A stretch of 64,000 nucleotides of DNA from Convolutriloba macropyga (taxonomy: Eukaryota), in assembly GCF_964194025.1 (NCBI RefSeq), contig NC_134479.1, positions 38,936,001 through 39,000,000 on the forward strand. Direction: 5' to 3'. A model generated the notes under the pieces. It made no database searches. It was not told the DNA's origin and saw nothing but the letters and a program-made list of their open reading frames with translations. Positions 1,430 through 48,400 of this stretch are shown here, one piece after another. The position numbers and the translations under genes were made by a program. Every line of letters starts with the position of its first letter. The stretch's first letter is position 1.

Positions 1430-4400
1430 ATTCGAGTACAGTCACGTCAACGATGACATGTATGGACTGTCCGACAGTGACTCAGATGCTAGTGGCTCTG
1501 CTGAGAGTGGTAATGGTAAAACCGAACGAGGCGCTCCTAGGAAGCACAAGAAAAAGGGCGCTGGTAACGCGGACGATAACAGCTCCGATGGTGGTCAAGA
1601 GTTTGTTAGATCCGATCTCTACCAATGCGAGAAGGGTCTGTTAACGTACGGCTGGGGCAATTGGTTGAGAATTATTGAAGGGTGCAAGTTCAGGCGTGAT
1701 ATGACAACAAAGTTAGTCGAAGACTTGTGTCGGTGTATCTTGGCCTATGCATTGCAGTGGTACCAAGGGGATGAGAAGATCCAGCGGTTTATAAGAGAAC
1801 TGATAACTCCTGATAATGACAATATTGAATTCCTAAAATCTCATGCTGCTCAGTCAAGCGTTGCTCCACGAGGTCGGAAATCAGCGCGTGGAAATAAATC
1901 GGATCGATCAAACTCCGAAGCTAAAACGGAAGAGCAAACTCATTGGTCAAACACTGAGAACCTTGAAGCTGTTTTGTGTGATCCAACGTTTCGAAAACAT
2001 GTACGCTATCAATGCAATAAAGTACTAATTCGCGTCAGGACTTTATTTTTCATTCGTCATGAAGTTATTGATGACTTGGCTGAAAAAGTTGATTCAGGTG
2101 TAAATTACAAGGATCTACCATTGCATGTACCGCCGATTGATATAGTGAAACCCTGCGATTGGTGGGACGAAACATGCGACAAATGTTTGTTTATCGGTAT
2201 TTATAAACATGGATACGACCAGTTTACAAAGATCAGAAATGATCCCACGCTTTGCTTTTTATCGATCGTCGGTGAATCGGAAACCGAGATTCAAGATAAC
2301 ACGTTGGATGAAGATGAACTTGAGAATGACCTTGAAAATGCGGAAATGAAACCCGAAGGTCAAATGGACGGCGATGAAAATGAAGCGAAAAAGGACACAG
2401 GACAAGATGGAGAAAGTGATAATGCAACCAGTGTAAAGCAAGAAGTTGAACCGTCGGTAGAAACAGAAAGCACCACAGAAAATGGTGAAATTTCTTCTCA
2501 AGAAGCAGTTTCGAGTGAAACATCTGTGAAGCAAAATGATAACGAAGATTCGAAACCTGAAAATTCTGAAGAGAAAAGTAATGACCAAAATGATGAACAG
2601 GAGGCTACTTATTGGCCACCGACTTCAGCCATAAATAACAGACTTAGAAAGTTAATTGCCGCTCTTCAAAAATTGTCCAAGAAACAGAAACTCATGCTTG
2701 AAAAGCGCAAGAATCGACTTGAAAAACTAGCCATTATCAACGCTACGAAGCCGCCACCTGAAGTGAAAGAAAAATGGGCGAAACGCGAGGAAAATGATTT
2801 CTACAAAACCATATCGACTTTCGGTTTACAATATACACAAGATGGTAACGTTGTTTGGGACAAATTTAGAGTGCTGGCTTCTTTGAACCGTAAGTCAGAT
2901 TCTGCTCTCACGCAATATTGTGACGCTTTCAAGGCTATGTGCGAGAAAGTTTGCAGGATTAAAATTGAACCTCTTGACGAAGTTGATAGCTCAGCTCCTC
3001 AAATCGAACCGATCACCGAAGATCGAGCCCGGAAAACTCTGCACAGAATCGAATTGATGCGGAGAATTAGACTGGATGCAATTTATCATCCGGAATTTGA
3101 GGAGAGGATTAAACTGTGCCAGGCTGCAATGGATATGCCCTCATGGTGGATTCCGGGAGAACATGACCGGGACTTGATGATCGGAGTTGCGAGTCATGGA
3201 ATCCTAAGAAGCGAAGTCAACTTATTGCAAGATCCGACGCTTTGTTTCTTGAATGTCAAAGATGAGATCATGAAAAGCGTGCAACAAAAGCATGATGAAA
3301 AAGTTGCCAAGTTTAAAAGGGATAGAGACACCGAAATTACTGACTCTCAAGCAACGTTGACAACAGTATCAAACTCTACTCATGAAAATCTTGCCACTGA
3401 ACAAAATGTTGAAACTTCGTCAGTTTCAGTAGATAACGAGAAATCGGAAGTTTCGATGTCTAATTCAGACGAACCAAAGATCGACTCAGAGAAGAAAGAG
3501 AATGATGTCGGATCTACAGAAATGAATGAACCTTTGTCTGAAAAGGTCAATCTAACTGAGGAGATCAAAACTGAAATTTCACCAGAAGTGAAAAGTGAAG
3601 TTAAAACTGAAATTGAGCGCGCTCCCTCGCCAGCACCTGTGAACATAACTGATATGCTTGGAGTAGCGTACTTAGTGCAGTGGCCCAAAGATCGGGTTCT
3701 GGTTGCAAGGTTGGAGAAGATTTGTACTTGTATCGAGAACGGAGGATGGCCGAACATGAAATGGAACCAACCTCCCGCTCCGGTTTCATTTGACAAGCAA
3801 GCTGCATTGCAGGAAACGGAAGAGTTCCAGGAACGTCTGGTGGATAAAACTAACCAGCCGAAACAACAGCCCGTTGTCCAGATCATGCCAACTGATGCTA
3901 TTATTGATGGGTTGTCGGCTAACCGAGTTGCCAGTGATGGCTCTACTGTGTGCTCTTTTAACAAACCAGGACGTCGTGGAAAAGCGTCCAATGCAGGTGT
4001 ACATTTGCCGGCAAATATCCGGAAGCAAAGCAATAATGTCAGCGCGACACCGAATCCAATTGCTGATGAGAAAAGTTTGTCAAAACTTAGAGAGCTTTTT
4101 GAGAAGCAAGGTACAGCTATGGAGAATGAATCGCCTTTGCCGCTAAGCGGAGGAGGCATCGGAGGCATTATGGATTTGTCCATGAAAGCAGGTAATTAAG
4201 TCAAATCAAATTTAAAAGTATTTAAGTCAAATAAAATCGTAGTCATTTCGTACAACTTTTTATTCCGAGTACTGGTTTTAAATCTTTACAGAAACTGCTT
4301 ATCTTTCGAACGCAAAATCTTGCCGTGACTAGGAATTATATTTAAAGTCAGAGGAATAAACTCTATTTCTCTCTCTCTCTCTCTAATTTGGGATGTGATG

Positions 4401-6383
4401 GTTTTTTAAGGTTTCCTATCATATATCTGATATTGTGTTAAATGGCTTTGATTTTATATACTTGTATTATTTCTAGGAGCAGGTTCTCTAGGCATAAACG
4501 TTCCGAGTGTGAGCTCCAAGTACGCCAACAGTGAAAGGTCGACACCGGACTCGAGAGCAGAAGATGCGGACATCTCGGATCAGGGATCTGTTATTGCTGG
4601 TGGATCGGAAACCCCAGACCTAAAACGCCGAAGTGTTGGTAGCTCTAAACGCAAAAGGAAGCATGCTTCGATCATTATTGATCCCTCAAAACTTGATGTT
4701 GATAATATTAACGGAACAGAACACGTTGCAGTTGTTGATAGAATATCAGGTGTTAAAATTGAAGGAAGTGATGCTCCGATATTGAACAACGTTGTTGATT
4801 TCTTGTACAAGAACAGCACGTTTGACATTGCTCCTGAGTGGGAGGTTATCGTGAAGGCTCAGAAGAGATTCCCAGCCGATTTAATGAAGCGAGTTGCTGG
4901 TTTGAACCCTGGGGGTAGTCCAGAATCAAAGAAATTGAAGCAAAGTGGAAAGCAGCTGTACTCGCCTGCGAGATCAGTCAGCCAATCAGCTTCGAGCTCG
5001 GTGGCAAATAATCAGAACTCAGGTTCTACCTCATCAACTGCACAATCGGCCAATCTGTCATCCGCCGACCTTCTGTCGCAAGCTGCTTTACTTAGTAGTC
5101 TTTCATCCATGGGTGGGAGCTCAATGAATCCTTTCGGATCCTTGCCGAATCTACCTCCAATCACTCCAGACCTGGCATCGCTTGGGCTCTTCAATCCCAT
5201 GTTATCGATGTTTCCTGCAGGATCTCAGAGTACAACAGACCACAAATCAGCATCGTCAATTGCTGCAGCAGCAGCCCAAAGTGCTGCTTTGAATTATCAA
5301 TTGGCAAGTCTAGCGGCGGTATCGTTAAACCCGCTGCTTGCTCAGTCACTGAACCCGTTTTCATCGATTCCCGGTTTAAACCCGTTCGGAGGAGCAGCTT
5401 CAGGTCAAGACGCTTCAGCAGCGCAGTTGGCTGGCCTGTCGGCATTGCTAAGTGGAAGCTTGCCTCCAGGCATGAGTCCCGATTCTCTTCTTGGATCCCT
5501 GTCTCAACCTGTCAGTACTGCCAGTGCTACACCAGCACCTGTCGAGAATACATCATCAAAGCTTTCCGCAAGCAGTAGTGGATCTGGAAATAAATCAAAC
5601 AGTCAAATGTCTCCAAAAGCTGTAAATACTGCTTCAGACCTCCATTCCCCAAAGTCGCCTGTTGCAAGCGGTTCTGCATCGCCAGGGAACTCTAAAGTTG
5701 CGACCCCGCCATCGACACCTGCTAAATCTGGTACCCTCATAGGAACTGGAACTAGCGGAAGTTCTAGTTCAAATTCAAAGTCACAGCGTTCCTCTCCACC
5801 AGCAGCAATTTCTAATTCTGCGACACCCGCAACAGCAGCATCGCCAGTCAATCCTGTAGCATCAAATTTGCTTCCTAACATTCCGCAATTATCTCCAAAT
5901 GACCTCTTGACCGCTGCATCACTTGGATCGCTTCCTTTTATGATGCCACCATCGGTTCCGTTTCTTCCTTCAAGTCAGTCTTCGACCAGCTCAAGTTCAT
6001 CTTTAAACAGCGCGGCTGCTATTCCAGGCTTCGACCTATCGGCTGCAGGGTTGGAAGCTGCTCAATTGGCAGCTTTAGCCAGTTTATGTGCCGGTGGAGG
6101 TATTCCAGGAGCAACTGCGACGGGTGTGGATTTGCAACCCACAAACGCCCTGTTTGGAGGATCGGCACCGTTGTATCCCAACTCGGACTTGTCGAGGTTA
6201 TCAGGCGTCCAGAGCGATTCCTTCATGAATGAACAAAACGCTTTGTTGGCAAGAATGCAAAAAGAACTGGCTGATCATTTGGCAGGCACTAGCAGTGAAA
6301 CGAGCAACGTTTCTAGTTCTCAAATGAAGGACACGTCAATGAGTAATGCTGATACAAAATCGAAAAATCCGAAATCAAATTGA
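1430..6383 (+). CDS. CHD7: CHD7/8/9 (kismet-like) chromodomain-helicase, 3' part only; exons 1430-4191 and 4477-6383 (upstream exons are outside the window)
   Basis: CHD6-9 C-terminal motifs EKGLLTYGWGNW, WWDETCDKCLFIGIYKHGY..IRNDPTLCF, SANT-like KWAKREENDFYKTISTFG and WPKDRVLVARLEKIC. BRK domain INGTEHVAVVDRISGVKIEGSDAP..FDIAPEW. Acceptor tttag|A at 1429/1430. GT-AG intron 4192-4476 joins the two long ORFs in frame (G|GA). The paralogue (CHD6/7/8/9) cannot be resolved. Confidence 0.9.
4368..4384 (+). repeat. (CT)n microsatellite in the CHD intron
   Basis: Seen directly in the sequence. Confidence 0.8.
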
Positions 6384-7659: not shown

Positions 7660-10430
7660 TCTTATTAATAGCCGCCGTCAGCCTCTCAACGGCTTTTATT
7701 TAGGCGCTCTCCATTTTACAATCCAAAGGACTTCGATTGTATTGGCGTGAAGATCTGTTCACGCTTTTTTCGGCTTTGTTACGTCTGTGAGAAGTCAAAT
7801 TAGAATTGTGCTTTTAGCCACGCTGAAGTACTAAAGGGAGCGAAATTTAGAGTAGGTTTAAGGCGTGACTTTCTTCAAACTACCTTTAAAGTGGAGCCAA
7901 AAATTGGTGTGAATAAATTTTCGGTTTTCGCGAGGGAGTTTTTTTCACGTGCAACAATTTTTTCTTTTCTGTTTTCAGAGTTGATTTTCCGTTTTCAGTG
8001 CTTTTAGTATAATACACATGTGTTATAATTGCGCCTAGTTAAAATTGCTAGAATGCATCAAGGGGTAGCTGAAATCTTTTACGACCTCAACACTTTTTTG
8101 TCAAACAACATTAAAAGAATATTTGATTTTGCCCATTTTCAAAAATTTTTTTGCGTTCTTATCTATTAGTATCATCAATGACAGGTCTCATTGGTTGATG
8201 ATGAGGCGCAAAAGAAACTAATTAATGGTCCGAGCTGATAGCCTATTAGTTTTCATGACTTTGACAATACTTTTTCTCAACAATTTTGTTAATTTATGAG
8301 TTTTTGTTGTACTTTTTTAATTTTGTTGTCCTATCATTTATTCTCATTAATAAACTGTCTCAAGGCTGCTAATGGGGTTATTTTTCTCAGTTTAATGGTC
8401 TCTGTTCAAATCTGATGGCTTCTATGACTCTGATATCAGTTGTTTTCAAGGAATATTATAGAATTTTTGAGTTTTGCTGCTACCTTTATTATCTTATATC
8501 CTTGTCTCAATATTGACAGTTTTCCTTGTTTTCTAAAAAGCTTCTCTTTTTGTTAAAATACTTTTCAATTCATAGCTATTTTTTTTTATTTATACACTTC
8601 CCCTTTTTTTGAAAAAAAACTTTTTTTGGATTTTTAATTTTTGCAAGTTTTATTTTGACCGTGCCTTTAAAAATAGATAGGATGTTTTTAGTCTTGCTTG
8701 TTTTGTTCTTTTCGTAAAATTGCTTAATCTCAATGGTGTCAAACTATTTGTTCTCATTGGAAATCTAACAAGGCTTTTTTGGCAGGTCAAAGCTAAGTCA
8801 ATTCTTTGGATTGTAATTCAGGACTTTTCCAGCTATGTTTGCTTAATTCACTTTACTTTTCGATTACGCTTTTCGTTTTACATAAGTGACGATTTTCACG
8901 CTTGACTTCTGACTTACCTCCCTCTGTTTAAACTGAATGGATTTTAAGTTTTTTCGCGCATTGAATTACACAGTGTAGAAAATACGGTCAAAGTGAAAAG
9001 AGAAAAATCAATAGATCAAAAATAGGTTAAGCATATAAAGCACGGTCGTGAAGTCATAGTGCATTAGGTTATCAAAGTTGAATAAAGCGATTGCTAGCTG
9101 GCATTAGTATTTTTAATTGCTCTTGAGAGAAGTTCATAGCGATTATTGTAAACGTGTCTTTTCTATGCAAAATTTTCGCTTGACAATTTTGACTTTTCGC
9201 GTGACTTTTACGCCCTTAACTTTTTGCGTTTCGCGTGATCTAAAATTCTCTCTCAATCACAATTTGAAGCAGCTGAACTCAATTGGCGGCAATTTAATTC
9301 TAAATGTCAAATAAAAAGTGCGGCGAAACTGGTGCCATTTTTACTTCATATCTTAATAGTGCTGTATGTTAACCTCTGTGGTTATTTAAAGCGCACCATT
9401 GAACTTCTTAGTCTCATTTAGGCTCCCCTCCCTCCTCCTCCCCGCCCCCGACTGAAGCAGGCTGTAATTGATTAGAGCTCCCGCTAGTCGTTCGAGAGCA
9501 ATTCTTCCGACGTTTAGTCGGTTATGTTTCTTAATAGTCGTTCGGAAGCTGATTTAAGTGTAATTTTTGAATCTAACCGAATATGCAGAATTTGCTCACC
9601 AAATAAAAAAATTTTGACACTTCTGTGACTTCTGTTCTTGAACAAATTGGTTTTGGAATATTGATAAAAAAAAACTATTTTGATTCCTTTTACTTCAAAT
9701 TATTTTTCCAAAAATACATTGAGATTTATCTTCTATTGCTCGCTAGCAAAGGAAACTCAGGTTGATTTCCCCTTCTGTATTCAATTATGAGTAATTTGCT
9801 ATTGTAGGATTAATTTGGCTGGATCTACTCGTACTTCCGTGCAGTACAGATCGCTTGAAAATTTGAAGTTCTCAGTCACATTAACTTGTTCGGTCGATGT
9901 ATTGAACAATTAAGTTCTGATTTTCTGTCAGCGTTTATTTTGTTAGTTCGATTTGTGAACTTGTCTGAGCCAGAAGTTAAAGAAGTCTTGTCGATTTTTC
10001 AGTTGCTGTAAAATAGAAGCTTCAGTTTCGAAGCGGGCTATTATTGCGTTCTTTATAGTTTTTGAGAAGTCGTTGCATTGAATTAGTGGTCGGTTTCCCG
10101 GTCTGTGAAGACTATTGACTTCTCTGGGCTAGTTTGATTTTTCTCTCAATTCGCTGAGAGTACTTTCAGCGCAGTCTTTCTGCGGAAATGAAATCAAAGT
10201 GGAAAACGAAATCAGAACGACTGATGGGTAAACAACCCATAAAACCCAGATGTAGATACACGATTCGCTTTACCATTTTTTCTTTACCCAGTCTATGCTA
10301 ATTCGTATTTGTAAAAAGCCTTTTATCCTCCCATTGTAGGAAAACATTCAATCTCATTTTTTGTTTGATTCAATTGCTCTGAAGGTCATTGGAATCAATT
10401 GCAGCTATCGTCCAGCAATGTGTGATTTTT
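7660..10430 (+). repeat. Diverged modular repeat copies between CHD and Chk1
   Basis: 7666-7960 resembles 19716-20050 and 466-660. 9115-9190 resembles 23398-23472. 9480-9530 resembles 24060-24110. 10190-10430 resembles 1010-1290. Confidence 0.65.
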
Positions 10431-10856: not shown

Positions 10857-12877
10857 ATGAATGATTCAAACGTAGAGAACCGGAACCCTGGTCCCACGCT
10901 GTCCGAAAGTGGGGCCACTATACCGAATCAAATCGGTCACAATGTGTTCACAACAACAGAGACTAAACCTTTGGCACAGAATCACGCTGATAATGAGCTC
11001 AGAATGCAAGATTTGTCTTTGGAACAACAACCTGAAAAATCCAAGGAGTTTATCAAAGGATGGGAACTCGTAGACGTTCTGGGTAATTTTTTGATGATTG
11101 CGGGTTTTTGCATCGGAGGCATCTTTTTTATTAGAGGCAAGATTTTTGCAAGATGGGGTCTCGTTATCAGCTCTCAGCTATTAAGCTTCAAAATTTATCT
11201 GTCAAAACTGGCAAAAGCTTAGAAACCTTTGAGGCAAAAACTGGATGTTTCCTCTCAGAACAGAATGTTCTCTCCCAGAACAGATTCTCCTGAACGTTTT
11301 TGGTGTAATATTTGTTTGTGCAATGTACGGTTAGCTAGTTTTAGCTACTATTTGTTCGGATCGCACCTGGTGGGGTAGTAATTATGCCCAACTGTTCTTG
11401 TTAATAATGAGAAAAATCATGAATGTATATTATTGATAGTCAAATACGAGTTTGTTAGTTTTTTTGAAAAATTTTAGGGGAGGGTGCTTATGGAGAAGTG
11501 CATCTTGCCATAAACAAAGAAAACAACATCTACGTAGCAGTTAAAGTTGTTGCATTGTCAGACCAAAACAGAGAGTTAATTCGGAAAGAGACAGGAATTC
11601 ACAAACTTGTTCAACATAAAAACGTGATCAAATATTTCGGTGACCGACCCACGTCTGATGGCCATCAAATGTATATTTTCTTAGAATATGCAGAAAACGG
11701 AGAACTTTTCGATCGAATCGAGCCGGATATTGGAATGCCCAGAAAAGAGGCCTTCAAATATTTCACACAATTACTGGATGGTGTTGAATATTTACATAGC
11801 AAAGGTATTGTACATAGAGATTTGAAACCTGAAAATTTGCTTCTAGATAAAGATTGCAATTTGAGAATTTCTGATTTCGGGTTGGCGACTTTGTTTAAAA
11901 TGAAGGGTAAAGAACGAAAGTTGAATACTCGATGCGGAACTCCGGCTTATCTGGCGCCTGAAATTTTGTCAGGCGGCTATTTTTATGCTGAGCCGATTGA
12001 TGTATGGTCTTGTGGAATCGTTCTGTCGGCCATGATGACAGGCGAGCTTCCGTGGGACGAACCGACTCTAAATTGTCAAGAATTCAAGCTGTGGTCGGAA
12101 AAGAAGTATTATAACACACCTTGGCCTAAAATTGACACAATTGCTTTAGGGTTCTTTCTGAAAATTCTTCATTTGAAACAAGCTGAAAGGCTGACCATAC
12201 CAAATATAAGAAAAGAAACTTGGTATGTTCGACAAACTCAAGCTGCAAAGGCGTCTAGAAAACGACAATTTTCACCCGGGTCATCGCCCATTGCACACTC
12301 GCCTAGTAGACCTTTTAAAATGGCCTGCAATCGAATTGAAAATTCGCCTTGTAGGAGTCCATTGCCGGACTTTAGCCATGGTATGGCTCAAAGCCAGCCG
12401 AATATTTCCAGCCCTATCAGAACCCCAGGAAAGGTTTCCCTCGCTAGTGGAGGAGCATCGCCTGAGCTGACACGATCCACAAAAGACTTTATCATGAGCC
12501 AGCCGAATGATTTGGGTGCAATATCAGTTACACAAACAGGCCCTGGATCGCAGAAATTCAAAAAAGTAAACCGAATGACCAGATTTTTCACAAAGGGCAG
12601 CCAGTCTGAAACTCTGAACCTAATCAAACGGTACCTCGAACATAACGGCATATCTTACAAGTTCGAAGTTAATTTAATCACGGCTTCTGTTATGGATTCG
12701 AGATCTAATAGATTAGTGTGGAAAATTGCAGCTATTGGTACTGGCGAGAAAGATTTGAACTTGGTGGACGTTCGAATGTCAAAGGGGTGCGGAATTGAGT
12801 TCAAAAAGCAGTTTATCAAGATGAAGAATAAACTGGTTGATATGATAGTGGATTTACCCCTAACTTATATGCTGTAG
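10857..12877 (+). CDS. CHEK1: Checkpoint kinase 1; exons 10857-11082 and 11478-12877 (541 aa)
   Basis: Splicing GT-AG intron 11083-11477 restores WELVDVLG|EGAYGEV. Kinase motifs HRDLKPENLL, DFG and CGTPAYLAPE. SQ/TQ cluster (AQSQP, IMSQP, TQTGPGSQ). Chk1 C-terminal motifs RMTRFF and RMSKGCGIEFKKQF. Confidence 0.95.
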
Positions 12878-13096: not shown

Positions 13097-13401
13097 AATG
13101 CTTGGTGCCGAGTTTTAAATTTTTAAGTTTTTGTTCTGTGAACGCTCCAAAGTTGTGCTATTGTGTTCTATTTTTTTGGTTCATTTAAAATTTGAGATAT
13201 GATTTTTATATACTGCTTTGAGTGTTATCTGCAGTTTCATCAACTGTTAAGTTCCAGAATTTGTTAAATTGAGATTATTATAGCAAGGATTTACATCAAG
13301 TTCGAGTTGAATTTTAACGTTTCTTTCAGTAAATTGTGCAGAGGAAAAATGTTGGTCATCCGTTTGCTGTGGGCTAGCTGTTTCAAGTTTTAGATTTAGT
13401 A

Positions 13402-16400
13402 ATGCCTTCAAATAGAATCATTTCATCAATTACCAAATTCGGAAGTAGGTCGACCCCATTTCTGAAGCCTCATGCAGCGATAGCTAACACAAATTTGCTC
13501 CAAAGAATGTCCAAGTCAACTTTGGAAAGCAAGTTTGAAGAGATGTCCTCAAAAGTCAACAGTTTGAAGAAAGATCCCGGTAACGAAGTCAAACTAAAGA
13601 TGTACGCTCTTTTTAAACAGGCAACACAGGAAAGTTTGATGCTCATTTTGTTTCACTTTAGCCTGACTCCTGTTGTCTTCTAATATTCTGTAAGTATTAC
13701 TGCATTAGATATTTTTTTTTCTGAAATTTTTGTCCGCTTCACGCAACAATTACATAACATGAGTCGTATTGCTAATAGTTTATTGTAAGTTCGTTGTTTT
13801 GCTATCAATGTAAACACTTGAAAAAAGTTCAGAGGAGGGGAGGGGAAAATTCGACACCAGCAATCCTTCAATGCAGCCCTGCTTTTAATTTTTAAAAATG
13901 GCTTCTCTAGCTTTTGTTTTTGAAATGAGCATCAAATGTCTAGGGTGCAAACACAACCTCAAAACCCGGAGCTCTCAATTTTGTAGCGAAAGCAAAATGG
14001 GACGCATGGACAAACTTGAAAGACATGAGCAAAGATGACGCCATGCAGGAATACGTCAGCGTCGTCGAGGGATTAATAACCAATGAATCGTCGTCTTCCG
14101 AGGAATCGAAAGAAACCGGAAAGTCAACGGCAGAATCGAAATTTGAGTTTTTGCTGTATGAAGTGAAAGATGGTTACTGCAAAATAACGTTTAACAGGCC
14201 CGAAAAGTACAACGCGATAAACTGGAAATGTTACGAAGAAATCGGAAATGCTTTGAATGAGGCAGCTCAAGATGAAAACGTTGTAGTTGCAGCCATTACA
14301 GGTACGAATCAAGTTTACTCAGTCCGTTTGCCATTTTAAATTGCTTGAGTAGTTTAGCTTGTTTAAACGAGTACTCTTGCGTGATACAGTCGAGAAAAGT
14401 ATTTGAGCTGATATTTGTGTTTATAGTTCATTTGATCAAAGATTATAAGCCAATTTGTGTAGGCAGTTTTTTTGGAATTGTGCAGGCAACATTCCAGTAA
14501 TTGATCAATTTCATTTTATTCAACTCTTGGGCGCCAATCGCCAGTACGAGTTGTGGAGGATTCTTTACTGCTTGCGATGCAGTTTTGCACTACACTTGGA
14601 GGCAAGACATTTCAACACTTTTTCAACTGCTATGGGGCTGACACGGTTGTTTTTTTTGTTCCAAAGTGGTCACTATGGCCCAATATACACTTGAGAAAAC
14701 ATCAGCAATTTTCCCCGAGTTTGTAATGTTCAAAAGTGGCTCATGTTTTGCGCATTTTCTTGGTTTTGTTTGGTTTCTGGTAGGTAACTGCATTTTCAAG
14801 TTGCTGGGGGACGTAGCCGACGTTCTTTTTGAAAAGAAATTAAGTAAATTGTAATCGAATTCGTACGGTATTGATCCTTTTGAACGAAGAAATTTCAATT
14901 CGTTGATGGTTCTACTGTTCAGGAGTTTTGTCTGAATTTAGAAGTGTAGCAGTCTTTCCAAATTCATTTTTTGACAGTGACAAGGCACAGTGCAATATAT
15001 GTTTTTTACTCTGCATCAAAGCTGCGATGTTACTTCTTACATTGAAAAGTTTCTACCACAATCACCCCTTTAGCCATCGTTCAATGTCTTTGGTTCTTTC
15101 GCAATAGTGATTGTGTCCTCCACCAAGGTTGTGTGGAACGAAGGACAAATTTGGGAGCTGCAAAAGGATTAGACAAAGGAACTGGGTTGTCAGGGTGTAG
15201 AACACACCCTTACATCAGCTGAGTCAGCAATTAAGACTACTCGCCTTATATAAGTTGCACAAAATTTGGGGTAAATTGAGAGAACTTGCTTCGAGTCGGC
15301 AATTGAGACTACTCGGCCTATATAGGTAGCTCAAAAATGGGGGATAAGTTTTCTTGAGATTCTTTACATAAAAAGTCTAATTTTCTCTTACGAAATCTTT
15401 GGGGCATCAAACAGGAATGATATAGAGTTAAGGAGTAAGATATCCGTTTATGATGTTTCAGCGTCATATTATGATTTTAAATTGTAAATTTTGTTGCGCA
15501 TATTGTATTAATCTGGTTTCAGGCAACGGACCCTTCTACTCAGCGGGCAACGATTTAAGTGGATTCCGACAATTGGCGGAAGAACATGGTGGTGACATTT
15601 ACAAAGCAGCCGCAGCCGCTGGAGTTCGATTGGAGACATTTGTGGACAGTTTTATCCAGTTTCCGAAGCCATTAGTTGCTTTGGTCAATGGACCGGCCGT
15701 GGGAATTCCAGTCACAACATTAGGATAGTTGACGCGCATTTCTGCCTTAAGAAATTTAGAGAATGATTTTCCTCATGAAATATGGAAGTAGAAGAGGATT
15801 TCCCTCTTTTTGCAAGTAGAAGCGGTATTTGTTCAAGGAGGCTCTGATATGATTGGCTGAAATACCATCAGTAATTTGCTGAACTAACTTTTCTTTCATT
15901 TTCATTTCACCTGAATTTTCTCTTACAAACTAATGTACCTTTAATCAGTAAAGACGGTAAGTCGAAAGGCAAGAAACAAAAAAAAACAGTCTAGGAGATA
16001 AAAATGGAGATTGAAAAAAATTTTTTTAGATTGAAAATAATTTCAAAATTATTGATGGTGTTTCAGCAACGAAGTATTCTAACTGGTATTTTGTTTTAAG
16101 GACAAGCTGAAAAACGTTTTCTTTTGCTGGCCACTCCATCTGTGTGGATATATGGGGATTGAGGCTCTGTGCTCGATGTCCCTATTTTAACGCCGACGTT
16201 AATGCTTAATTTTTTTTTACAATTGAAGCTCTAAACTAGTGTTAACGTTGGGTTCTGGTTCGGGTTAACGCTGAGTTTTGTATTAATACCCAATATAAGA
16301 GATAAGTAGAATTTGAGGAAAGGGTTTTCGAGGGAACACTTTATTGAATTTTCTTGATAATGTTTTGAACATTTGTCCTTCAATGGTAAATTAGTAACTT

Positions 16401-16851
16401 TTAATTTAAAATGCGCGTATCTTCAGGACTTTTCGACATTGTGCTTGCGTCATCAAACGCAACATTCCACACTCCTTTTCCTTCTCTGGGCCAGTCACCT
16501 GAAGGTTGTTCATCATACACATTCCCCAAGCTTATGGGCCACGCAAAAGCTGTCGAGTTGCTCATTTACGAAAAGAAAATCACAGCAGTTGAAGCTATGG
16601 AGCGAAATATAGTCAACGAAGTTATAGAGCAAAGCGATTTTCAGCGTATTTCACAAGAGAGACTTGAATTTTACGCATCATTGCCTCGGAAAAGTTTGCT
16701 TTACTCGAAAGGTTTGATTAGAGATAAACAACGTGAGAAATTGATGGCTGTCAACAAAGAAGAATGCGAGCGTTTAGTTGAAAGATGGACGTCTGAAGAA
16801 TGTATAAATGCCATTATGAAATTTTTGACCAGGAAACAGTCGAAGATATAA
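13402..16851 (+). CDS. ECI2: Enoyl-CoA delta isomerase 2 (ACBP + crotonase domains); exons 13402-13629, 13944-14301, 15523-15723, 16427-16851 (403 aa)
   Basis: ACBP motif [27 protein letters not shown]. Crotonase motifs [38 protein letters not shown] and [15 protein letters not shown]-terminal SKI (PTS1-like). Exon lengths sum to 1212 nt, in frame. Confidence 0.93.
13630..13943 (+). other. Non-canonical GA-AG intron (ECI2 intron 1)
   Basis: CAG|GAAAGT...GTCTAG|GGT gives KQATQ|GANTTSKPG, colinear with ECI2 KQATEGPCNMPKPG. The nearby GT at 13634 gives a frameshift or stop. Confidence 0.75.
15221..15350 (+). repeat. Two diverged 72-bp tandem units in ECI2 intron 2
   Basis: GAGTCAGCAATTAAGACTACTCG at 15221 and GAGTCGGCAATTGAGACTACTCG at 15293. 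Confidence 0.7.
15724..16426 (+). other. Non-canonical GA-AG intron (ECI2 intron 3)
   Basis: TTAG|GATAGT...CTTCAG|GACTT gives VTTLG|LFDIV, matching ECI2 VTLLGLFD. An in-frame TAG at 15726 rules out a downstream GT donor. Confidence 0.8.
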
Positions 16852-20400: not shown

Positions 20401-22827
20401 GTCACATTTGACTTACCTCACTCTCATAAATGACTTCCTCACTTTGAAATTGACTTTTATTTACTCTAATTCAAAGAGAAGATCAAATGGGTGTGTGTCA
20501 CTCTAAATGAAGGTTATTTGAGTCAGCTGACCTTATTCGGCTTTATGTTTCCTTGTACTATTAAAAAAACAAGTTAAAAAACTCAAGTTTTTCTCTTTTT
20601 TGTTGAATTTGTTTTTGAATGCCGTTTCTTCTTCCTTACTTTTTAATGGTTTTTGTGGAGGTTCAGGGATCATAATAGTTGTTCCAATTGTTTAGTCATA
20701 AATTTGGGCTATTTTTTCCTTCAAGTCGTTTCCGGAGTTCTTCCGGCTATGTTTTTTTTAAGATCTGTTCACACATTTTCATGATTTTTGAAGTCAAATT
20801 GCAGTAGTGATTTTGGTCACACCGAAACAGGAAATGGAGCGAAAAAGCGAGTGGTTTTGCCGCGTGAATTTTTTTCGCTCTAATTTTAAGGTAGAGTGAG
20901 GAAACGGTTTTTGAACAAAAATTCGCTTTCTCGCAAGTGGTTCACATGCGCCAATTTCACTTTGGTTTTTACTGTTTTTTTCGATTTTTTTGATCGGATT
21001 TTTTCCTAAATGGTTTTTCCGATTCACTCATAGTCCGTTCTAGGTCTAGTTTTTTTAGTCAATGAAGGTTCTTTGAATTGTACGTCAAGACTTGTCCTGC
21101 TATGTTTTTTTTATTTCGTCAAGATTTTTGTTAGGACATATGACGTCACAGCCACTTCTTGTGCATTCGTTCATGCAATTTCAACTGAATTGCGTGCGTG
21201 ACGTCATTTTAAGCGCGAGTTTTTTTTGTTCTTTCGCGTGATTAAATTTTTGGTCACACTTGACTTACCTCACTCTCAAAAATGACTTCCTCACTTTGAA
21301 ATTGAATTTTATTTACTTTAATTCAAAGAGAAGTCAAATGGCTGTGCCACTCTAAATGAAGGTTATTTGAGAGCAGCTAATAGAGGCAGCGAAAACTTAT
21401 ACAGATTTTTAATCAAAATATAACTAATCAGCCTTCAATGAAAAGACGAATTTTTTGGTCTGTCTTTGTTACTGTTTTTTTTTGAGACAGCAGATCTACG
21501 AAGCTATTGCGGCTATTTTCTGGCAATCTGCAGGCTATGCTTGTTCTTTTTGTGATTAACAACGCGTCCTATCTTTGTGAATGTAAATAAACCAAGGCCT
21601 TAAATCCCTATTTTGTTTTTCTGGCTTCTACTCAATTATAGGATCTTCACTTTTATCGACTCCACAATTTTGGTGGGTGGAGCATCTGATTCATGCTTGA
21701 TTTGCGTCTTATATAATAGGATCCATGGTACAAAAGGATAGGACATGAGAGGTCGAATTATTTTCGCGGGTCAAATGATTTTCGTGATTCGAACGATTTT
21801 TGTGGGAAGTCACTGAGTTTTTTTTTGGGATAATCGAAGTGTTTTGTAGGCTGAAATTGCGATGCAGAGTTTGAGTCACAGGGGTGTCAATGGAAGTATT
21901 AGTGGTGGTGGGAATGGTCACGTCACATACAGTGTTCGGAATGGACAAACAGAGATTGCCAAGTTCTCTCTAGCCAAGTCATGCTTCCGCATTGGAGAAG
22001 AGATTAATGGTTAGATTTTTTGGCTTCCTAATTTTGATCGGATTTCTTCAGAAACTTGTGTAAATTTAGATGTTTATTACGGCAGAATGTACGTATGGAG
22101 GTGTTAATAGATGTCATGCTATTTTTGGGGGGGATTTGTCGGCTTTGCGAAAAAGATGCTTCTGCCTCTAGTTGCAACTTTCATTGCTATAATTGTTACC
22201 TAATTTATTTCGACAGATTTTTATATTTTTGTTACTTGCGTAAGTACTGTTACGGTTCATCTTTGAGAAACGAATTGAATTAATTACACTATTCTCTTTG
22301 CTGTCCATTACTGTTATTATTCATAAATAATATTGTTAATCAAATTAAATATTGTTGCAGGTTTCTTTGAATTCAACCCTTTCCCGCGGTACTGTCTACA
22401 ATACACTGTGAGCTTGCAATGTGAAGAAAAGCTGTCCGAACAGTTCCGACTCGATTCCTTGTCAACGGCGCAACCAGAGTCGTTCGGATCCAAATGCGAA
22501 TACGTTGCAGATCTCTCACAATGTGAAGTTTCTTTGCCGATTCCTCATTCCGTTACTCCATCTTTTTCCACAGAATTGGTGTCCTTTTCATGGAGCTTAC
22601 AATTCACGTTTATAATATCAACTGAAAGTCATCCTGACATCGCGACGAAGTTCACGAACACTTCGTTTGATGAAGAAAACGACGATCAAATTATAAATTA
22701 CGGTTCGCCTTCCAATTACGAGACGTTTTCGTGGACGTTGCCTATAACGCTGTTACCCAACAATCCGTTCAGGCTTCAAAGTTGCTCAACAGCTTTGAAG
22801 CGGCACCATATCTTAAATATGAGTTGA
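17462..22827 (+). CDS. RGP1: RGP1 (RAB6A-GEF complex partner, Ric1-Rgp1); exons 17462-17649, 18391-18541, 18806-18869, 18948-19163, 19585-19694, 21850-22009, 22361-22827 (451 aa)
   Basis: Motifs PVFLAGEQVKVKLTIEN, TKPEIICCDLSLGPQES, PTSFNGHTVRFTYKL..Q..PIRVL, KSCFRIGEEING, CLQYTVSLQCEE, TPSFSTELVSFSWSLQF and ETFSWTLPI. Six GT-AG introns with compatible phases; total 1356 nt. Confidence 0.88.
19710..21545 (+). repeat. Modular repeat cluster in RGP1 intron 5 (modules A-B, A-C, B-C-E)
   Basis: AATAGCCGCACAGCGAT at 19716 and 20193. Module C at 20248-20528 and 21114-21378. Confidence 0.85.
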
Positions 22828-42429: not shown

Positions 42430-45400
42430 TCGGGTATGAATGCATGATATTAATTTCTTATTGAATAATTTTTTTTCTGGCTATTGGGTCGTGGCACTTG
42501 AAGTATTCACTTAAAAATCGTTTATCGTCGTAGTAGCTGTGCTGGTTTTATGATTCGCCTAAGTTCTCTGCTGTGCTTTTGGGCTTCTGTTCTTCAGTTT
42601 GCTTGGGAGTTGTTTTGAAATACATTGTGATGTTATGCAATTGACGCGACTAGCTGGTTTATGATTTTGACCAGTTGTATGTTTTGTTGTTTCAACTTTG
42701 ATGTTATCCCACTGATATGACTTCTTGATTTTTATTACTATCTGACTATATTCTGATTGTTGTTTGATTTTCTCGTATAGCGACGGAATCTCCTCTCCTT
42801 CATTATTTGGTGTTTCTTCCCATTTTCTCTCTCGGTCTGCTGAATCGAATGATGTTTTTACCATCTTTCGTATGATCGTTGATTAATTTCTTATCTGATA
42901 CTTTGATAGTTTTTCTTCGGAAGCTGACTCCTTGAGCTGAATATTTTTGCGGTAGTATTGAATACTATCTAAATGAATTTTTTGTTCTGGATTCCGTTTC
43001 TAGTTTATGATGTAACATCTTTCGGGTATGAATGCATGATATTAATTTCTTACTGAATAATTTTTTACTGGCTAGTGGGTCGTCGCACTTGAAGTGTTCA
43101 CTTAAAAATCGTTTATCGTCGTAGTAGCTGTGCTGGTTTTATGATTCGCCTAAGTTCTCTGCTGTGCTTTTGGGCTTCTGTTCTTCAGTTTGCTTGGGAG
43201 TTGTTTTGAAATACATTGTGATGTTATGCAATTGACGCGACTAGCTGGTTTATGATTTTGACCAGTTGTATGTTTTGTTGTTTCAACTTTGATGTTATCC
43301 CACTGATATGACTTCTTGATTTTTATTACTATCTGACTATATTCTGATTGTTGTTTGATTTTCTCGTATAGCGACGGAATCTCCTCTCCTTCATTATTTG
43401 GTGTTTCTTCCCATTTTCTCTCTCGGACTGCTGACTCAAATGATGTTTTACCATCTTTCGTATAATCATTGAATAATTTCTTATCTGATACTTTGATAGT
43501 TTGTCTTCGGAAGCTGACTCCTTAAGCTGAATATTTTTGAGGTAGTATTGAATACTATCTCAATAAATTTTTTGTTCTGGATTCCGTTTCTAGTTTATGA
43601 TGTAACATCTTTCGGGTATGAATGCATGATATTAATTTCTTACTGAATAATTTTTTACTGGCTAGTGGGTCGTCGCACTTGAAGTGTTCACTTAAAAATC
43701 GTTTATCGTCGTAGTAGCTGTGCTGGTTTTATGATTCGCCTAAGTTCTCTGCTGTGCTTTTGGGCTTCTGTTCTTCAGTTTGCTTGGGAGTTGTTTTGAA
43801 ATACATTGTGATGTTATGCAATTGACGCGACTAGCTGGTTTATGATTTTGACCAGTTGTATGTTTTGTTGTTTCAACTTTGATGTTATCCCACTGATATG
43901 ACTTCTTGATTTTTATTACTATCTGACTATATTCTGATTGTTGTTTGATTTTCTCGTATAGCGACGGAATCTCCTCTCCTTCATTATTTGGTGTTTCTTC
44001 CCATTTTCTCTCTCGGACTGCTGACTCAAATGATGTTTTACCATCTTTCGTATAATCATTGATTAATTTCTTATCTGATACCTTGATAGTTTGTCTTCGG
44101 AAGCTGACTCCTTAAGCTGAATATTTTTGAGGTAGTATTGAATACTATCTCAATGAATTTTTTGTTCTGGATTCCGTTTCTAGTTTATGATGTAACATCT
44201 TTCGGGTATGAATGCATGATATTAATTTCTTACAGAATAACTTTTTACTGGCTAGTGGGTCGTCGCACTTGAAGTGTTCACTTAAAAATCGTTTATCGTC
44301 GTAGTAGCTTTGCTGGTTTTATGATTCGCCTAAGTTCTCTGCTGTGCTTTTGGGCTTCTGTTCTTCAGTTTGCTTGGGAGTTGTTTTGAAATACATTGTG
44401 ATGTTATGCAATTGACGCGACTAGCTGGTTTATGATTTTGACCAGTTGTATGTTTTGTTGTTTCAACTTTGATGTTATCCCACTGATATGACTTCTTGAT
44501 TTTTTTTACTATCTGACTATATTCTGATTGTTGTTTGATTTTCTCGTATAGCGACGGAATCTCCTCTCCTTCATTATTTGGTGTTTCTTCCCATTTTCTC
44601 TCTCGGACTGCTGACTCAAATGATGTTTTACCATCTTTCGTATAATCATTGATTAATTTCTTATCTGATACTTTGATAGTTTGTCTTCGGAAGCTGACTC
44701 CTTAAGCTGAATATTTGTGAGGTAGTATTGAATACTATCTCAATGAATTTTTTGTTCTGGATTCCGTTTCTAGTTTATAATGTAAATTTTTTCGGGTATG
44801 AATGCATGATATTAATTTCTTACTGAATAATTTTTTCTGGCTAGTGGGTCGTCTTACTTGAAGTGTTCACTTAAAAATCGTTTATCGTCGTAGTAGCTGT
44901 GCTGGTTTTATGATTCGCCTAAGTTCTCTGCTGTGCTTTTGGGCTTCTGTTCTTCAGTTTGCTTGGGAGTTGTTTTGAAATACCTTGTGATGTTATGCAA
45001 TTGACGCGACTAGCTGGTTTATGATTTTGACTTGTTGTATGTTTTGTTGTTTCAACTTTGATGTTATCCCACTGATATGACTTCTTGATTTTTATTACTA
45101 TCTGACTATATTCTGATTGTTGTTTGATTTTCTCGTATAGCGACGGAATCTCCTCTCCTTCATTATTTGGTGTTTCTTCCCATTTTCTCTCTCGGACTGC
45201 TGACTCAAATGATGTTTTACCATCTTTCGTATAATCATTGATTAATTTCTTATCTGATACTTTGATAGTTTGTCTTCGGAAGCTGACTCCTTAAGCTGAA
45301 TATTTGTGAGGTAGTATTGAATACTATCTCAATGAATTTTTCGTTCTGGATTCCGTTTCTAGTTTATAATGTAAATTCTTTCGGGTATGAATGCATGATA

Positions 45401-48400
45401 TTAATTTCTTACTGAATAATTTTTTCTGGCTAGTGGGTCGTCTTACTTGAAGTGTTCACTTAAAAATCGTTTATCGTCGTAGTAGCTGTGCTGGTTTTAT
45501 GATTCGCCTAAGTTCCCTGCTGTGCTTTTGGGCTTCTGTTCTTCAGTTTGCTTGGGAGTTCTTTTGAAATACATTGTGATGTTATGCAATTGACGCGACT
45601 AGCTGGTTTATGATTTTGTCCAGTTGTGTGTTTTGTTGTTTCAGCTTTGATGTTATCCCACTGATATGACTTCTTGATTTTTATTACTATCTGACTATAT
45701 TCTGATTGTTGTTTGATTTTCTCGTATAGCGACGGAATCTCCTCTCCTTCATTATTTGGTGTTTCTTCCCATTTTCTCTCTCGGACTGCTGACTCAAATG
45801 ATGTTTTACCATCTTTCGTATAATCATTGATTAATTTCTTATCTGATACTTTGATAGTTTGTCTTCGGAAGCTGACTCCTTAAGCTGAATATTTGTGAGG
45901 TAGTATTGAATACTATCTCAATGAATTTTTCGTTCTGGATTCCGTTTCTAGTTTATAATGTAAATTCTTTCGGGTATGAATGCATGATATTAATTTCTTA
46001 CTGAATAATTTTTTCTGGCTAGTGGGTCGTCTTACTTGAAGTGTTCACTTAAAAATCGTTTATCGTCGTAGTAGCTGTGCTGGTTTTATGATTCGCCTAA
46101 GTTCTCTGCTGTGCTTTTGGGCTTCTGTTCTTCAGTTTGCTTGGGAGTTGTTTTGAAATACATTGTGATGTTATGCAATTGACGCGACTAGCTGGTTTAT
46201 GATTTTGACATGTTGTATGTTTTGTTGTTTCAACTTTGATGTTATCCCACTGATCTGACTTCTTGATTTTTATTACTATCTGACTATATTGTGATTGTTG
46301 TTTGATTTTCTCGTATAGCGACGGAATTTGCTCTCCTTCATTATTTGGTGTTTCATCCCATTTTCTCTCTCGGACTGATGACTCAAATGATTTTTTACCA
46401 TCTTTCGTATAATCATTGATTAATTTCTTATCTGATACTTTGATAGTTTGTCTTCGGAAGCTGACTTCTTAAGCTGAATATTTGTGAGGTAGTATTGAAT
46501 ACTATCTCAATGAATTTTTTGTTCTGGATTCCGTTTCTAGTTTATGATGTAACATCTTTCGGGTATGAATGCATGATATTAATTTCTTACAGAATAATTT
46601 TTTACTGGCTAGTGGGTCGTCGCACTTGAAGTGTTCACTTAAAAATCGTTTATCGTCGTAGTAGCTTTGCTGGTTTTATATTTCGCCTAAGTTCTCTGCT
46701 GTGCTTTTGGGCTTCTGTTCTTCAGTTTGCTTGGGAGTTCTTTTGAAATACATTGTGATGTTATGCAATTGACGCGACTAGCTGGTTTATGATTTTGTCC
46801 AGTTGTGTGTTTTGTTGTTTCAGCTTTGATGTTATCCCACTGATATGACTTCTTGATTTTTATTACTATCTGACTATATTCTGATTGTTGTTTGATTTTC
46901 TCGTATAGCGACGGAATCTCCTCTCCTTCATTATTTGGTGTTTCTTCCCATTTTCTCTCTCGGACTGCTGACTCAAATGATGTTTTACCATCTTTCGTAT
47001 AATCATTGATTAATTTCTTATCTGATACTTTGATAGTTTGTCTTCGGAAGCTGACTCCTTAAGCTGAATATTTGTGAGGTAGTATTGAATACTATCTCAA
47101 TGAATTTTTCGTTCTGGATTCCGTTTCTAGTTTATAATGTAAATTCTTTCGGGTATGAATGCATGATATTCATTTCTTACTGAATAATTTTTTCTGGCTA
47201 GTGGGTCGTCTTACTTGAAGTGTTCACTTAAAAATCGTTTATCGTCGTAGTAGCTGTGCTGGTTTTATGATTCGCCTAAGTTCTCTGCTGTGCTTTTGGG
47301 CTTCTTTTCTTCAGTTTGCTTGGGAGTTGTTTTGAAATACATTGTGATGTTATGCAATTGACGCGACTAGCTGGTTTATGATTTTGACATGTTGTATGTT
47401 TTGTTGTTTCAACTTTGATGTTATCCCACTGATCTGACTTCTTGATTTTTATTACTATCTGACTATATTGTGATTGTTGTTTGATTTTCTCGTATAGCGA
47501 CGGAATCTCCTCTCCTTCATTATTTGGTGTTTCATCCCATTTTCTCTCTCGGACTGATGACTCAAATGATTTTTTACCATCTTTCGTATAATCATTGATT
47601 AATTTCTTATCTGATACTTTGATAGTTTGTCTTCGGAAGCTGACTTCTTAAGCTGAATATTTGTGAGGTAGTATTGAATACTATCTCAATGAATTTTTTG
47701 TTCTGGATTCCGTTTCTAGTTTATGATGTAACATCTTTCGGGTATGAATGCATGATATTAATTTCTTATTGAATAATTTTTTTCTGGCTAGTGGGTCGTG
47801 GCACTTGAAGTATTCACTTAAAAATCGTTTATCTTCGTAGTAGCTGTGCTGGTTTTATGATTCGCCTAAGTTCTCTGCTGTGCTTTTGGGCTTCTGTTTT
47901 TCAGTTTGCTTGGGAGTTGCTTTGAAATACATTGTAATGTTATCCAATTGACGCGACCAAATAATTTTTAATAATTTTTTCTTAGCTAAAGATAATCCTT
48001 CCCTTTTTTCCTGCTGCACATAATATCTGGCAGAATTATTGTTCTGCTATCGCTAGTATCGCAACTGTGTTTTCCTGGTGATCCTGGCAAGGTAAATTAA
48101 TCATGAATCTAATCAATTTGTCTTTTGGAGAATTTCGCTGCTTTTCAAATCTTGATCTTCTTAATTTAACCAGTTTTACTGGTTTGAGTTTGCTCAGTTG
48201 TGTTTTTTTGGTTCAACTTTGATATTATCCCACTGATATGACTTCCTTATTTTTATTACTCTCTGATTATATTTTGATTGTTGTTTGATTTTCTCGTATA
48301 ACGACTGAGTCTCGTCACAGTCATTAGTTGGTATTTTACCCATTTTCTCGGTCTGCTGAATCGAATGATGTTTTACCATCTTTCGTATGATCGTTGATTA

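Follow-up and report, generated by a model that had tools for sequence, protein, structure and literature searches.

Introns that begin with GA and end with AG (GA-AG introns) have been described at percent-level frequency only for the copepod Eurytemora affinis and the tunicate Oikopleura dioica (PMC5714493, PMC7072748). GA donors are almost absent from other animal genomes, and the way in which they are recognized in Eurytemora and Oikopleura is unsolved. In Eurytemora, the GA and GG donors are preceded by an obligate exonic AG and belong to lineage-specific gains (Robertson 2017, PMC5714493), and the GA-AG introns of Oikopleura have also been reported (Frey & Pucker 2020, PMC7072748). According to the accounts of the work given in those two papers, the 'dead-end' GA donor of human FGFR1-3 is efficiently used by the major spliceosome, provided that the site is otherwise strong (Brackenridge et al. 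2003, in PMC5714493, PMC7072748). Here we describe two putative GA-AG introns in the gene for enoyl-CoA delta isomerase 2 (ECI2) of the acoel Convolutriloba macropyga (Xenacoelomorpha), found in a 64-kb stretch of its genomic DNA (hereafter, the window). Both carry, close to their ends, complementary arms predicted to form a terminal helix. A literature search on acoel splice sites and non-canonical splicing found no report.

Introns with paired ends or with non-canonical borders are known from other systems. In Fritillaria borealis, as far as it is summarised in PMC11282704 and PMC13326754, GT-AG introns keep conserved positions and the non-canonical ones occupy new positions (Henriet et al. 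2019); the latter, thought to derive from miniature inverted-repeat transposable elements (MITEs), are spliced out by a U2-type spliceosome whose tolerance is altered. The nonconventional introns of euglenids, in the summaries of PMC11282704 and PMC12501133, have short inverted repeats near their ends which pair with each other through a core of 3 bp (CAG/CTG), and they are excised late, as circles, by a mechanism given there as unknown (Milanowski et al.). In zebrafish, introns bridged by (AC)m-(GT)n tracts have a structure that enforces splice-site pairing and relaxes a core requirement of splicing (Lin et al. 2016, PMC4691745), and the same paper cites pairing between the 5' splice site and the branchpoint in yeast introns.

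The gene lies on the plus strand at 13402-16851 of the window and has four exons (Table 1) which, once joined, give an open frame of 403 amino acids (aa). Its product has an N-terminal ACBP domain followed by a crotonase-fold isomerase domain (Pfam PF00887 and PF00378) and is colinear with ECI2; its exons matched the solved structures 2cqu, 2f6q and 4u18, and in an alignment of 8 sequences (the model, four near relatives, scallop, starfish and chicken) it was 50-78% identical to animal ECI2 proteins. Judged from these matches, the gene is ECI2. In C. macropyga it is a single-copy, functional gene. The RefSeq protein XP_075258309.1 ('enoyl-CoA delta isomerase 2-like [Convolutriloba macropyga]', 403 aa) and the four-exon model are identical; in the annotation this protein is a normal entry and not a low-quality one, and it shares a 90% cluster with the open reading frame (ORF) of exon 4 (146 aa). 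The locus in GCA_964194025.3 (OZ077310.1) matched the window at 100%. Both GA-AG junctions are already present in NCBI's public annotation of ECI2, and the expectation of the first-pass annotation that gene predictors would mis-model such genes fails in this case, the RefSeq model having exactly these junctions. As a rule, the NCBI pipeline takes a non-consensus splice site only if an alignment requires it. No transcript-derived members were found in the ECI2 protein cluster, and a search with the full-length protein returned no transcript protein at 90-100%.

The placement of the junctions was examined by searching each exon separately against solved structures. For the first GA intron, residue 51 of 2cqu_A (ACBP domain of human ECI2) is the last one matched by exon 1 and residue 52 the first one matched by exon 2; for the second GA intron, exon 3 reaches residue 140 of 2f6q_A (human ECI2), residue 141 corresponds to the split Gly and exon 4 continues from 142. 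In addition, the alignment of the 8 ECI2 proteins showed zero gaps at both GA junctions, and the intronless ECI2 frames of two related assemblies (L003 and L010) run uninterrupted across both of them, colinear with the model. When the junctions are slid by 1-2 nucleotides (nt), the intron ends become GG..TA, AA..GG, GG..CA or AT..GG, and the GT present at +5/+6 of each GA donor is out of frame and without a matching AG. Since the shifted registers lose the AG acceptor and the GT at +5/+6 is unusable, GA-AG is the only reading with an AG acceptor. If translation is continued into intron 1, it meets stop codons after 22 codons, and in intron 3 it does so without delay. The two GA donors which the first-pass annotation had placed at 13630 and 15724 were thus correct in coordinates and sequence, and its statement that only GA-AG junctions restore the ECI2 frame and its conserved residues is borne out by the structures, the gap-free alignment and the intronless orthologues. 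On this homology, the GA-AG junctions are the only placement that restores a conserved, gap-free protein, and both are very probably used as modelled.

It must be considered whether transcripts use other sites, the GA junctions being an artefact of homology-guided modelling. A plausible GC donor exists at 13621 (CAG/GCAACA, the slash marking the exon border), exactly at an ancestral intron position. With the only in-frame AG acceptor, however, it loses the tripeptide ATQ, which is gapless in 8/8 ECI2 proteins, and intron 3 offers no in-frame GT or GC alternative, its GT at +5 being the out-of-frame one indicated above; the stops met on read-through of both introns also count against this explanation, to which we give very little credence. 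The same GC donor and the loss of ATQ had been pointed out in the first-pass annotation, where the tripeptide was called conserved. The donor and the deletion stand, while the conservation is only partial: ATQ is gaplessly aligned and AT is conserved, its third residue being variable.

Table 1. Exons, introns and predicted terminal-helix arms of the ECI2 gene of C. macropyga (positions in the window; the slash marks the exon border).
Feature	Positions	Strand	Description
ECI2 exon 1	13402..13629	+	ATG to Gln76; N-terminus of mitochondrial type, plus first half of ACBP domain; open frame
ECI2 intron 1	13630..13943	+	GA-AG, 314 nt, phase 0; donor CAG/GAAAGT (13627-13635), acceptor TGTCTAG/G
Intron 1 helix 5' arm	13635..13648	+	TTTGATGCTCATTT, from +6; 14 nt, 100% complementary to 13923-13936
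Intron 1 helix 3' arm	13923..13936	+	AAATGAGCATCAAA, stops 7 nt before intron end
ECI2 exon 2	13944..14301	+	Remaining ACBP domain, linker, start of crotonase fold
ECI2 intron 2	14302..15522	+	Canonical GT-AG, 1221 nt, phase 1 in Gly196; CAG/GTACGA...TTTCAG/G
ECI2 exon 3	15523..15723	+	Ends at residue 140 of 2f6q_A
ECI2 intron 3	15724..16426	+	GA-AG, 703 nt, phase 1 in Gly263; donor TAG/GATAGT (15721-15729), acceptor ATCTTCAG/G
Intron 3 helix 5' arm	15732..15741	+	ACGCGCATTT, from +9; 10 nt, 100% complementary to 16409-16418
Intron 3 helix 3' arm	16409..16418	+	AAATGCGCGT, stops 8 nt before intron end
ECI2 exon 4	16427..16851	+	C-terminal crotonase fold; stop TAA 16849-16851

The prior rarity of GA donors is all that speaks for the A at +2 being a sequencing or assembly error, or for the locus being a decaying pseudogene. 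The genomic check proposed together with the first-pass annotation was made with the four sequencing runs listed, from two samples; none has RNA in its library description, and all are of DNA (flat depth across exons and introns, no joints). Over 13300-15067 and 15527-15892, the stretches covered by the resulting contigs, there were zero differences, and the contigs have the A at 13631 and at 15725. The same two GA donors are found in a second, 94% identical copy of the locus (L001; ENA ERZ25071359), which may represent a sister strain or a different haplotype. Its coding sequence (CDS) is intact and differs from that of the window at 21 of 1212 nt (13 synonymous and 8 non-synonymous codons), and the divergence between both copies is 1.7% in the exons and 7-11% in the introns, the overall identity of intron 1 being 89%. 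Since exon divergence is well below intron divergence and the CDS is intact, ECI2 is under purifying selection, which excludes a pseudogene on the comparison of the two copies. With four DNA runs and a diverged copy showing A at both sites, a CDS intact in both copies, exons far more conserved than introns and a normal RefSeq protein, error or decay is scarcely credible, in agreement with what the first-pass annotation held on the two points. In intron 2, sample S2 (runs X2-X4) has a second allele at 15068-15175, with seven linked base differences and some 30-45% of the local word depth; it was absent from sample S1.

Apart from +2, the GA donors have a context that is complementary to U1/U6, consisting of the exonic AG present upstream of both (CAG/GA and TAG/GA), the G at +1 and AGT at +4 to +6. 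The base at +3 is A in intron 1 (GAA) and T in intron 3 (GAT), with only two introns to compare. The 3' ends of both GA introns are pyrimidine-rich and finish in a terminal AG. Given this agreement of the donors with the U1 consensus except at +2, and 3' ends of this kind, both introns are most likely removed by the major spliceosome. A U12-type reading, with a /RTATCCTT donor and a TCCTTAAC-like branch site, was rejected: the donors are GAAAGTTT and GATAGTTG, and no TCCTTAAC motif is present in either 3' region. Small nuclear RNA or other RNA genes were not found in the window by Rfam.

With respect to end pairing, the longest perfect pairing between the first and the last 40 nt was determined for all 11 introns reconstructed in the window, that is, one of CHD (4192-4476), one of Chk1 (11083-11477), three of ECI2 and six of RGP1 (whose model has 451 aa, as in RefSeq). 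GA donors are therefore those of 2/11 introns in the window; the first-pass annotation had given 2 of 12 donors, and its two GA donors stand while its total does not. Its suggestion that the spliceosome of this lineage may routinely accept GA draws, in this window, on these two introns out of 11. The pairing reached 14 and 10 bp in the GA introns and only 5-8 bp in the nine GT introns, ECI2 intron 2 having a longest end pairing of 5 bp and no terminal helix. Among 20000 random pseudo-introns taken from the same window, the probability of a pairing of at least 10 bp was 0.00175 and that of at least 14 bp was below 5e-5 (0/20000). When the whole introns were folded with ViennaRNA, 14/14 pairs of the intron 1 helix were present in the minimum free energy (MFE) structure, with pair probabilities of 0.91-1.0, as were 9/10 pairs of the intron 3 helix, with a probability of ~1.0 for its GC core. 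The +1 G and +2 A of both GA introns can also pair with the C and U that precede the terminal AG, although this pairing is too short to weigh. A 10-bp inverted repeat at 17654/18207 had suggested a further helix, in intron 1 of RGP1, but it was rejected as a chance match given that the true acceptor is at 18390.

The second copy of the locus allows the helices to be compared. In intron 1 of L001 the arms are identical, and the first 50 nt and the 3' arm are unchanged while the interior differs at 30/214 positions; this conservation of the ends against a diverged interior fits a constraint on the sequence. In intron 3 of L001 one G>A change produces a C-A mismatch and, next to it, an A>C change creates an extra G-C pair, the duplex energy being -12.7 in L001 and -16.6 kcal/mol in the window, i.e., ~4 kcal/mol weaker. 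No relatives were available between the 94% DNA identity of L001 and ~66-78% protein identity, and L003 and L010, being intronless, are uninformative on the helices.

The paired ends also bring to mind a removal that does not involve the spliceosome, as has been proposed for the nonconventional introns of euglenids, whose ends pair and which leave as circles. The geometry is similar, with positions +4..+6 pairing with -8..-6 in euglenids (PMC11282704) and the helices starting at +6/+9 and ending at -8/-9 here. However, both acoel introns have full spliceosomal signals except +2, and the euglenid introns have neither a polypyrimidine tract nor conserved GN-AG ends (PMC11282704). For these reasons, we consider removal by such a route highly improbable, and excision by the major spliceosome is the reading kept in what follows.

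For a comparison of intron positions with other animals, the ECI2 proteins of scallop and starfish were each mapped, with exact splicing, to the gene that encodes them. Both species have nine ECI2 introns in common, of which only the one corresponding to acoel intron 2 coincides, in the same position and phase. The snail Bulinus agrees where it is readable, as it shares the position of intron 2 and has no introns at the GA positions. The ancestral 'FKQ^AT' position is found 9 nt upstream of that of intron 1, and the ancestral 'AS..^ATFHTP' position 32 nt downstream of that of intron 3. From these comparisons, the GT intron 2 is ancestral to bilaterians and both GA introns are lineage-specific. 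The GC site at 13621 (exonic CAG/GC) is the ancestral bilaterian intron position itself, after the Lys-Gln of FKQ, a coincidence missed in the first-pass annotation, as were the terminal helices and the lineage-specific positions of the GA introns. At 13618-13629, either the former intron disappeared and another was acquired next to it, or a single intron was shifted by three codons.

Among the related assemblies, which show 60-67% protein identity, L010 (1963-5212) has an intronless ECI2 and keeps the Chk1-ECI2 neighbourhood, with Chk1 also intronless (Chk1 match of 68.6% identity), and L003 has two tandem copies of ECI2 (4806-5903 and 8049-8687), likewise intronless. As judged from these sequences, the two relatives lost even the ancestral intron that C. 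macropyga has kept. The homologues P0036, P0037 and P0039 are transcript contigs without introns.

The lineage-specific positions bear on the possibility that the GA-AG introns are spliceosomal and that their helices are relics of their origin, i.e., terminal inverted repeats (TIRs) of a MITE or an introner-like transposon without any role in splicing, the tolerance of GA then belonging wholly to the spliceosome of this lineage. New positions of this kind are also those of the introns of Fritillaria and Eurytemora (PMC11282704, PMC5714493), and inverted-repeat ends are a hallmark of transposon-derived introns (PMC11282704), the repeats being here perfect over 14 and 10 bp and placed 5-8 nt inside the ends. 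Moreover, a separate element with a perfect 13-bp TIR is present at 7716-8816 in the same window, and one helix of L001 tolerates a mismatch. Nevertheless, no target-site duplication was found, since the flanks (GAAAG with TGTCTAG, and GATAGTTG with ATCTTCAG) contain no direct repeat beyond AG/G; the arms of one intron show no relation in sequence to those of the other, and neither the arms nor the intron bodies have a second occurrence in the 64-kb window. The DNA word depth over the introns is similar to that of the exons, which points to no abundant family at 95% identity or more, and the arms and ends of intron 1 are fully conserved against the 30/214 differences of its interior. Helices that are only relics are thus unlikely, though by no means a far-fetched explanation.

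The reading that we favour is that the GA introns are spliceosomal introns of recent gain and that their weak donor is tolerated, the terminal helix probably helping in this; we regard it as likely. According to this model, the GA introns would have been inserted at (C/T)AG/G proto-splice sites and the major spliceosome would remove both of them. The helix, which extends from 5-8 nt inside the 5' end to 7-8 nt before the 3' end, would hold the 5' splice site beside the 3' splice site and may in this way offset the poor +2 by enforcing splice-site pairing. We infer the use of the junctions in RNA and their cutting by the spliceosome from DNA and homology, and likewise the help given by the helix and a gain in this lineage rather than a loss elsewhere. 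With regard to the helix, whether it contributes to splicing rather than being a relic is evenly balanced.

Several observations weigh against the favoured reading. The sequencing runs show no joints, being DNA, and the splicing in RNA is deduced. The RefSeq model of ECI2 may derive from protein alignment and not from transcripts. The association between helix and GA (2/2 against 0/9 GT introns, Fisher p ~0.02) comes from only two GA introns. The helix of intron 3 is not strictly conserved, its mismatch in L001 being uncompensated and without true covariation. In addition, the helix of intron 1, starting at +6 (or at +5 with a G-U pair), would compete with the pairing of U1/U6 at +5/+6. Finally, since the nearest relatives are intronless, gain and loss of the GA introns are not polarised.

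A tentative extension, which we would sooner doubt than assume, is that acoels, or at least Convolutriloba, have a common and distinct class of young introns in which a helix joining the ends takes over part of the definition of the 5' splice site, freeing +2 (GA, GG, GC) so that new introns can settle without GT. If true, it would represent an animal counterpart of the non-canonical introns of euglenids and Fritillaria and a living model of hairpin-ended DNA becoming an intron.

Other features of the window were as follows. Four co-directional genes separated by short spacers occupy positions 1-22827 (CHD6-9-like, Chk1-like kinase, ECI2 and RGP1), with ~525 nt between the Chk1 stop and the ECI2 ATG and ~610 nt between the ECI2 stop and the RGP1 ATG. 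The element at 7716-8816 lies in the CHD-Chk1 spacer and its perfect 13-bp TIR (TTACAATCCAAAG and CTTTGGATTGTAA) has a recurrence of the 13-mer in RGP1 intron 5, near 19770. A GC-donor intron at 7716/8804, delimited by the 13-bp inverted repeat, was rejected in favour of a TIR element, given that no coding exons flank it and that it shares text with the repeats of RGP1 intron 5; judged by its sequence, the element resembles a small DNA transposon rather than an intron. A repeat starting with AAGATCTGTTCACACATTTTCATGATTTTTGAAGTCAAATTG is present at ~465-700, in a CHD intron, and at ~20760-21000, in RGP1 intron 5, both being GT-AG introns; RGP1 intron 5 (2155 nt) also contains internally duplicated blocks. 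A long tandem array occupies 27000-60000. It includes, e.g., at 43153-47647, eight units of ~590 bp, each with a 123-aa minus-strand ORF without a Pfam match, and related units with a period of 471-489 bp elsewhere in the array, whose plus strand is strongly T-rich (AT skew of about -0.35).

The practical consequence for ECI2 alone is small because the public annotation is already right. In a broader sense, the locus adds a third, phylogenetically isolated GA lineage, Xenacoelomorpha, to the copepod Eurytemora and the tunicate Oikopleura, and the terminal helix is a concrete, testable cis-element that separates GA from GT introns inside one gene. If the pattern were genome-wide, it would give a mechanistic handle on relaxed 5' splice-site recognition, would tie intron gain to hairpin-ended insertions in an animal, and acoel annotation should permit GN-AG introns, with end pairing as a predictive feature.

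When compared with the described systems, the acoel introns are close to those of Eurytemora and Oikopleura. They share with them a start in G followed by A, an end in AG and the obligatory AG that finishes the upstream exon, and in all three lineages the introns would be constitutive and are needed for the full-length protein. As in Eurytemora, the GA introns occupy lineage-unique positions beside ancestral GT introns. The copepod and tunicate introns are supported by RNA, whereas the acoel ones are known from DNA and protein homology. Moreover, the base at +3 is almost always A in the copepod, while here it is A in intron 1 and T in intron 3, and both acoel introns have a strong terminal helix, end pairing not being reported for Eurytemora or Oikopleura in PMC5714493 and PMC7072748. 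The human FGFR site, in the accounts of it mentioned above, serves as an alternative donor and needs a canonical site or consensus element close by, in contrast to the acoel GA donors, which are the only usable ones and have no such element.

The separation between ancestral GT-AG positions and new non-canonical positions is also found in Fritillaria. However, the introns of this tunicate are ~95% non-canonical, mostly AG-AC or AG-AT, in the summaries available of that work, while the acoel gene departs only at +2 and most introns of the window are GT; in addition, no repeat family or target-site duplication was found at the acoel locus. With the euglenid introns, as summarised in the sources cited, the acoel ones have in common the non-GT borders and a helix placed a few nucleotides inside each end that brings both ends together, although the former have no polypyrimidine tract and no GN-AG ends, and the latter keep the remaining spliceosomal signals intact and have helices of 10-14 bp. 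The bridged introns of zebrafish are comparable in that the two boundaries of a spliceosomal intron carry complementary sequences which bridge it, but their arms are dinucleotide repeats, their donors are canonical and the step relaxed is that of U2AF2 at the 3' end, whereas the acoel arms are unique sequences and the base concerned is +2 of the donor. Taking into account these similarities and differences, the terminal-helix GA-AG introns of C. macropyga are best described as young introns in a third animal lineage, and as a variant of the known classes of non-canonical introns.

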